NCBI RefSeq assembly: GCF_001194135.2 | Contig: NC_069005.1 | Span: 30,385,484-30,449,483 of the forward strand | Origin: Octopus bimaculoides | Lineage: Eukaryota | DNA: 64,000 nt | Direction of reading: 5' to 3' | Shown here: in pieces, positions 25,567-25,626 of the stretch | Position numbering within the stretch: the stretch's first letter is position 1 | Layout: each line of letters opens with the position of its first letter | The notes under the pieces: generated by a model | The model's input: only the letters and a program-made list of their open reading frames with translations | The model's database searches: none | What the model was told of the DNA's origin: nothing | Made by a program: the position numbers and the translations under genes

Positions 25567-25626
25567 TGTGGTGCTATTTGATTGGTCGGTTCCGGTTCAC
25601 ATGACGTTGCCAGTAGTGTGACGTCA
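25567..25626 (-). promoter_or_regulatory. Candidate ER-stress promoter/enhancer: ERSE + M-box + palindromic CRE
   Basis: Minus strand 25585-25567 reads CCAAT-CAAATAGCA-CCACA (CCAAT-N9-CCAC[A/G]). GTCATGTGA lies at 25605-25597 and TGACGTCA at 25619-25626. The cluster is a unique-sequence island between low-complexity tracts, oriented toward SERCA 9.7 kb downstream. Confidence 0.5.

Follow-up and report, generated by a model that had tools for sequence, protein, structure and literature searches.

A promoter-type motif cluster 9.7 kb upstream of the SERCA start codon in Octopus bimaculoides as a candidate distal promoter

Alternative distal promoters with non-coding leader exons are a feature of invertebrate SERCA genes such as those of Artemia and Drosophila. 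ERSEs, the elements at which NF-Y and ATF6 act, are tripartite with a GC-rich spacer that carries a GGC core, and like NF-Y sites they work in either orientation. We know of no established use of ERSEs beyond vertebrates and plants. The ERSE consensus CCAAT-N9-CCACG, its relaxed CCACG/A form and the parts played by NF-Y and ATF6 have been published (PMC5890977; PMC7037772) and bear out the description of the ERSE as the NF-Y/ATF6 element in an earlier note on the locus described here. That note also named mammalian SERCA2 as an ATF6 target, and activation of the rat SERCA2 promoter by ATF6 is indeed documented by a citation in PMC5389830. Molluscs possess both ATF6 and GRP78, the two having been reported from scallop (PMC9680081).

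The window, by which we mean the whole 64-kb stretch of octopus DNA that was analysed, has 34.8% GC and 17 runs of N, which mark it as draft assembly. Its sole SERCA coding exon is the first, located at 15785..15902 on the minus strand by tblastn against SERCA2 and by translation. This exon encodes MDLAHAKTAEEACGFFGVDSNVGLTDDQIKKNLEKYGPN (residues 1-39, MDLAHAKTAEE...) and ends in the donor ATG/GTAAGT with a score of 9.8, where all donor scores given here are heuristic only. An exact-match search of the window found an ERSE-like element, an M-box and a CRE inside 60 bases, in the SERCA orientation and about 9.7 kb ahead of the start codon, just as the earlier note had placed them, and each of the three (CCAATCAAATAGCACCACA, GTCATGTGA and TGACGTCA) has one exact match in the 64 kb. 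The ERSE-like CCAAT-N9-CCACA (CCAATCAAATAGCACCACA, spacer CAAATAGCA) is at 25567..25585 on the minus strand, 9,665 bases from the start codon at 15902 which lies on the same strand. The M-box or MiT/TFE-type E-box (GTCATGTGA, core TCATGTGA) follows at 25597..25605 on the minus strand and the perfect palindromic CRE TGACGTCA at 25619..25626. At the sequence level the CCAAT is an NF-Y-type box, as GACCAATCA at 25579..25587 on the minus strand (in plus-strand reading the Y-box TTGATTGGTC) fits RRCCAATSR. An ETS-type core CCGGAA at 25590..25595 on the minus strand was read from the sequence, the longer CCGGAAGT not being matched, and a half-CRE TGACGT overlaps the E-box at 25602..25607 on the plus strand in the context TGACGTTG, one base off the UPRE consensus TGACGTGG. 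The plus-strand order of the cluster is TGTGG-N9-ATTGG, TTCCGG, TCACATGACGT and then TGACGTCA.

The segment that holds the cluster (25411..25646) is single in the window by self-BLAST, in agreement with its earlier description as unique sequence, and with no copy there it does not behave as a multi-copy repeat or transposable element. On its left is CT-rich low-complexity sequence 2 kb long, and (GAT)n/(GGT)n repeats adjoin it on the other side. The cluster region, searched as a six-frame composite, gave no match in the protein database, exact look-ups of the ORFs across it found nothing, and a search of metagenome contigs with the gapped motif pattern was likewise empty. A non-coding RNA gene at the cluster was rejected, as the window contains no Rfam or tRNA match.

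Comparison with mammalian ERSE-I promoters (GRP78/BiP, GRP94, calreticulin, rat SERCA2) shows the same NF-Y flanks, the same spacer of exactly 9 bases and the same CCAC core, and as at the ATF6-responsive rat SERCA2 gene the octopus element stands upstream of SERCA in gene orientation. The typical ERSE however has CCACG and a GGC spacer, whereas the octopus site has CCACA and the AT-rich CAAATAGCA without GGC. Chaperone promoters carry several ERSE copies while the octopus site is single and 9.7 kb from the start codon. The CCACA pentamer also reads TGTGGT on the plus strand, which we take to be a RUNX core. There is no CCAAT-N9-CCACG in the window, and CCACA fits the relaxed CCACG/A consensus only (PMC5890977). 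The ERSE-like part is, as judged from its bases, primarily a strong NF-Y site, with recruitment of ATF6 by the CCACA half putative.

A likeness is also found with TATA-less NF-Y/CREB promoters of animal housekeeping and bidirectional genes, which like the octopus cluster combine NF-Y, palindromic CRE, E-box and ETS core within 60 bases and show retained CpGs and a switch in strand composition. MiT/TFE (M-box, CLEAR) and USF E-boxes resemble both the octopus TCATGTGA with its flanking T and A and the TCACGTGA of a second cluster described below, but the CLEAR motifs of lysosomal genes are in tandem where the octopus sites are single, and the core of the first cluster is CATGTG, not CACGTG. As in Artemia and Drosophila there is a single SERCA gene with candidate promoters far upstream, the leader exon being putative in octopus.

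No motif of the cluster exceeds chance singly. The CRE and the M-box are each expected 0.71 times per window, and the CCACR form of the ERSE 0.31 times, with at least one match in 28/100 dinucleotide shuffles. An earlier estimate of about 0.1 chance ERSE matches comes near the 0.13 obtained from window counts (94 CCAAT, 163 CCACR). With k running from 0 to 30 there are 9 matches to CCAAT-Nk-CCACR in the window or 0.29 per spacing, so that the N9 spacing is not special, other CCAAT-to-CCACR spacings being equally common, and the ERSE-I match is not above chance (0.13-0.31 expected against an average of 0.29 at other spacings). The ERSE reading is thus not the source of the significance of the cluster. 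Taking a real NF-Y site as given, the chance of a CCACR at exactly N9 is about 0.0013-0.0015.

The co-occurrence of the three motifs is beyond chance, though the answer depends on how the question is framed. When any three kinds from a generic 38-motif vocabulary may fall together inside 60 bases, about 30% of random windows contain one or more such clusters and 4.5-7.5% contain two or more. A specific grammar, defined as NF-Y consensus plus TCAYGTGA-type E-box plus TGACGT(CA/GR) site, is observed twice against 0.0003-0.0007 expected, a generous figure as CRE and UPRE were grouped after the second cluster had been seen. The core-only grammar (CCAAT, CAYGTG, TGACGT) is observed three times against 0.31 expected, with a probability of about 0.005 for three or more. 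Promoter-proximal motifs are therefore clustered beyond chance here, with the figure of about 30% for the broad vocabulary kept in mind. The earlier argument had leaned on the CRE, the M-box and the orientation; the co-occurrence of the motifs does stand above chance, but orientation weighs little because ERSEs and NF-Y sites act both ways.

A second cluster with the same grammar, absent from the earlier note, surfaced in the motif vocabulary scan at 39554..39603 on the minus strand. In plus-strand reading it consists of TCACGTCA (TGACGTGA on the minus strand, UPRE-like), TTGATTGGTC (NF-Y) and TCACGTGA (a CLEAR-type E-box). A TATATAAA TATA box, read from the sequence at 39506..39513 on the minus strand, is about 41 bases downstream of its bZIP site in the minus direction, giving the textbook minus-strand order of E-box, CCAAT, bZIP site and TATA, and the box predicts a minus-strand start that would fall near 39480-39485. 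The 10-mer TTGATTGGTC occurs twice in the window, once in each of these two clusters. They have only motifs in common, and homology between them was rejected with an alignment score of 28 against a null of 22 +/- 3.8. By self-BLAST the second cluster has no further copy in the window, and its six-frame composite had no protein-database match; the same query found ten octopus gene models through a SINE that served as control, so the method is able to find octopus sequences. Over the 600 bases that follow on the minus strand no splice donor reaches a score of 6, the weak GAG/GTATTT coming nearest, and a polyA hexamer is located at 39000. A third and weaker instance, ACGTCACATGTGA-T-ACCAAT (ACGTCACATGTGATACCAAT; half-CRE/E-box plus CCAAT), is at 19323..19345 on the plus strand, 3.4 kb upstream of the SERCA start codon, and the flanks of its CCAAT are outside the NF-Y consensus. 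Recurrence of the grammar in non-homologous clusters supports a real regulatory grammar. It also follows from the second cluster that the site at 25.6 kb is not the sole promoter candidate upstream of SERCA.

The first cluster lies at the left edge of a CpG-retaining, CpG-island-like segment at 25560..26130 (27 CpG in 571 bases, GC 45.7%, observed/expected 1.05). Observed/expected CpG in the flanks is 0.43 at 25000-25559, 0.16 at 27000-28500 and 0.16-0.2 from 27 kb rightwards, and with repeats masked it is 1.08 in the island and 0.65 on its left, declines from 0.49 to 0.20 on its right and is about 0.9-1.0 beyond 40.6 kb. CpGs are thus locally retained against depleted flanks, which suggests an unmethylated region, although vertebrate CpG-island criteria are not directly transferable to the octopus genome with its AT-richness and mosaic CpG depletion. 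Strand composition changes at the same place, with plus-strand GC skew of -0.5 to -0.9 up to 25.6 kb and of +0.2 to +0.6 thereafter. An (ACC/CCAA)n tract at 25480-25521 to the left of the cluster and a (GGT)n tract at 25900-26045 to its right are mutually complementary, so that strand composition is mirrored around the cluster.

Outside SERCA intron 1 the strongest CpG depletion is found at 27-37 kb, between the two main clusters. Three models would account for this depletion to the same degree, namely SERCA transcription from 39.5 kb, an independent minus-strand transcript that begins at 39.5 kb and stops short of 26 kb, and a plus-strand transcript from 25.65 kb. Across the window, blocks of strong depletion (0.2-0.39) at 3000-9500, 27000-30600, 34758-36760 and 39801-40600 alternate with undepleted repeats, and the sequence beyond 40.6 kb is undepleted, a pattern that suggests mosaic germline methylation together with a transcribed domain reaching about 40 kb. 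Within SERCA intron 1 the local CpG observed/expected rises above 1 because three copies of a short repeat family lie there. This family has at least eight copies, at 21900-22091, 10736-11341 (three), 57480-57779 (two), 59162-59326 and 62775-62925.

Cues on the direction of transcription, taken from splice donors, polyA signals and upstream ATGs, conflict. In the minus direction the candidate leader donor GAG/GTAAAG at 25267..25275 (last exon base 25275) scores 7.1, and AAG/GTAGGA at 25533 on the same strand scores 8.6 and is too near the cluster to serve. The 25275 donor is preceded by two AATAAA hexamers, at 25421 and 25333. In the plus direction a candidate donor GTG/GTGAGG at 25901..25909 (last exon base 25903) scores 10.5, and the first 1 kb contains no AATAAA or ATTAAA. 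Upstream ATGs number 3 in the putative minus-strand leader as against 14 in the first 260 bases of the plus direction, which makes a coding leader unlikely on that side.

Apart from SERCA exon 1 the 64 kb contain no host coding exon that can be recognised. A Pfam scan of the high-complexity ORFs of at least 45 residues at 16-41 kb found no domain, and as far as coding ORFs of this size are concerned no further gene lies between SERCA and the cluster. At 41-64 kb the scan gave nothing but a weak DDE_3 transposase remnant. A search of 1.84 billion representative proteins with the longest ORF lying between the clusters found no homologue. On these Pfam and homologue searches we rejected a coding gene in the interval between the clusters or beyond them. 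Within 1.1 kb upstream of the start codon there is no NF-Y consensus, full CRE, CAYGTG E-box, MEF2 or CArG site, and a TATAAAG stands 31 bases before the start codon. We rejected a proximal SERCA promoter, this TATAAAG being too close to leave room for a leader and the 1.1 kb being without the grammar. The lack of another coding exon, the lack of proximal motifs and the position of the TATAAAG together favour a distal promoter with a leader exon. In the acceptor region before the start codon several AGs follow a pyrimidine tract that is weak and AT-rich. Further out, about 700-870 bases ahead of the start codon, a GC-rich block at 16590-16770 on the minus strand contains a CAGCTG E-box and is not repeated elsewhere in the window.

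Searching with the exon 1 peptide returned no spliced SERCA product, only a 42-residue read-through ORF of a close relative and an unrelated invertebrate. The relative's ORF, on which Pfam Cation_ATPase_N was found, comes from Logan assemblies of runs SRR11869385-94 (contigs L001-L004), which are genomic DNA colinear with 16870-15670 only and differ from the window by about 2-4% substitutions and by microsatellite indels. This divergence is too small for motif conservation to be assessed from these contigs. Exon 1 of the relative has one residue change, E10D, a 42-base insertion with A9 and T11 runs is present about 25 bases upstream of its start codon, and the GC-rich block at 16590-16770 is near-identical. 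In a marine invertebrate SERCA gene (contigs L005-L010) the 2.2-3.2 kb upstream of the start contain no ERSE, UPRE, CRE or NF-Y consensus, which is weak evidence that SERCA genes of invertebrates do not generally carry an ERSE. This gene has very short introns in a compact genome and was recovered from ocean metagenomes including Tara Oceans samples.

Judged on its motifs, NF-Y flanks and CpG content, the cluster at 25.6 kb is quite probably a genuine TATA-less promoter-type module. As the best explanation overall we favour such a Pol II module with SERCA as its likeliest target through a spliced non-coding leader, a reading to which we give a little less than even weight; that the cluster is itself the distal SERCA promoter we hold more tentatively still, as possible. 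On the favoured reading NF-Y would bind the CCAAT box, CREB/ATF-family proteins the perfect CRE and the half-CRE, and a bHLH-ZIP factor (USF or MiT/TFE) TCATGTGA, and the bound factors would jointly keep a region of roughly 570 bases unmethylated. Transcription, perhaps bidirectional, would start no more than about 100 bases from the cluster, with SERCA as the most likely productive target by way of a minus-strand non-coding leader spliced across about 9.5 kb to the start-codon exon. It may be that there are two alternative promoters, this cluster and the one at 39.5 kb. Several observations count against a SERCA promoter, namely the CpG depletion at 27-37 kb, which also fits a transcription unit to the right of the cluster, the AATAAA hexamers and moderate donors of the minus direction as against a plus direction without hexamer and with a stronger donor, and the weak splice acceptor before the start-codon exon. 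If confirmed, the favoured reading would locate the promoter of the single octopus SERCA gene, with a long 5' leader intron in use, and would provide a concrete site for asking whether the ATF6-to-SERCA calcium feedback of rat heart cells exists in molluscs. As it stands the cluster is an ordinary promoter-like one and the gain is two candidate sites, at 25.6 kb and 39.5 kb.

The same module could instead drive an unannotated gene or long non-coding RNA rightwards on the plus strand, with SERCA as a head-to-head neighbour or the promoter bidirectional. The CpG-rich segment does extend to the right and gives way to depletion at 27-37 kb that resembles a gene body, the first 1 kb is free of polyA hexamers with a strong donor at 25903, and the CRE is the motif closest to a plus-strand start. 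Neither strand has a detectable coding exon at 26-64 kb however, the 14 early ATGs make a protein-coding leader unlikely, and such transcription would meet the second cluster with its oppositely directed TATA box; we regard this arrangement as unlikely, if a serious rival. It is also conceivable that SERCA starts near 39.48 kb at the TATA-containing cluster and that the 25.6 kb cluster is an intronic enhancer or minor internal promoter. The textbook order of E-box, CCAAT, TGACGTGA and TATATAAA on the minus strand, CpG depletion from about 40.6 kb down to 26 kb with undepleted sequence beyond, and the failure to detect a coding gene between the clusters all agree with such a start. Set against them are the lack of a donor scoring at least 6 within 600 bases, where GAG/GTATTT is the best and weak, the polyA hexamer at 39000 and the moderate extent of CpG depletion at 9.5-25.5 kb, which leave a SERCA start at 39.48 kb distinctly unlikely, though it too is a serious rival.

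Two further explanations concern the motifs themselves. They might have come together by chance in non-functional sequence and been noticed by a reader versed in consensus sites, as is suggested by the chance-level frequency of every motif taken singly, by the roughly 30% of random windows with a three-kind cluster from the 38-motif vocabulary and by motif families having been partly grouped after the fact. The same grammar recurs in the window nonetheless, the CpG and skew signatures coincide with the cluster and the NF-Y flanks match the extended consensus, and we consider coincidence unlikely, about as doubtful as a plus-strand gene and marginally more so. Least favoured among these is that CCAAT-N9-CCACA is a working ERSE at which NF-Y and cleaved ATF6 raise SERCA when ER calcium or folding fails, in a feedback shared with vertebrates. 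In its support are an exact match to the relaxed consensus with the right spacing and NF-Y flanks, the low chance (about 0.0013-0.0015) of a CCACR at N9 once the NF-Y site is granted, the UPRE-like TGACGTGA of the second cluster, and the activation of the rat SERCA2 promoter by ATF6 and the molluscan ATF6 and GRP78 (PMC5389830 and PMC9680081 respectively). The match is nevertheless at chance window-wide with other spacings equally common, the site has CCACA rather than CCACG, an AT-rich spacer without GGC and a single copy, and its link to SERCA is putative; the marine invertebrate SERCA gene, in addition, lacks ERSE, UPRE, CRE and NF-Y consensus sites alike over the 2.2-3.2 kb ahead of its start codon. 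The same bases form what we take to be a RUNX core, and to our knowledge established ERSE use is confined to vertebrates and plants. On this balance an ATF6-responsive SERCA element at 25.57 kb is a hypothesis that we consider very unlikely. Of the earlier reading as an ATF6/ERSE promoter, the promoter-type module with its motifs, NF-Y flanks and CpGs has held up, but the ERSE match alone is at chance. More improbable again is the broader proposition that an ATF6/NF-Y ERSE grammar raising SERCA under ER stress predates the lophotrochozoan-vertebrate split, with UPR-type elements at two distal promoters (ERSE-like at 25.57 kb, UPRE-like TGACGTGA at 39.55 kb).

Several repeats and remnants were recorded in the window. 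The cluster was considered as a diverged copy of a SINE with TTGATTGG...GACGTCG and this was rejected, self-BLAST giving no similarity. SINE-like copies are located at 39000-39299, 47556-47844, 44018-44138 and 19547-19628, and translation of their ORFs gives 77-91% identity to ten O. bimaculoides UniRef gene models, which indicates that the repeat is exonised or mis-annotated in the published models. A Tc1/mariner transposase remnant WLPQSPDLNIIEHLW lies at about 42684-42941 on the plus strand with a weak Pfam DDE_3 match (E = 0.048). In addition a 219-base segment is present in two copies, at 27099-27317 and 32105-32321, which share 93% identity in the same orientation 5 kb apart.
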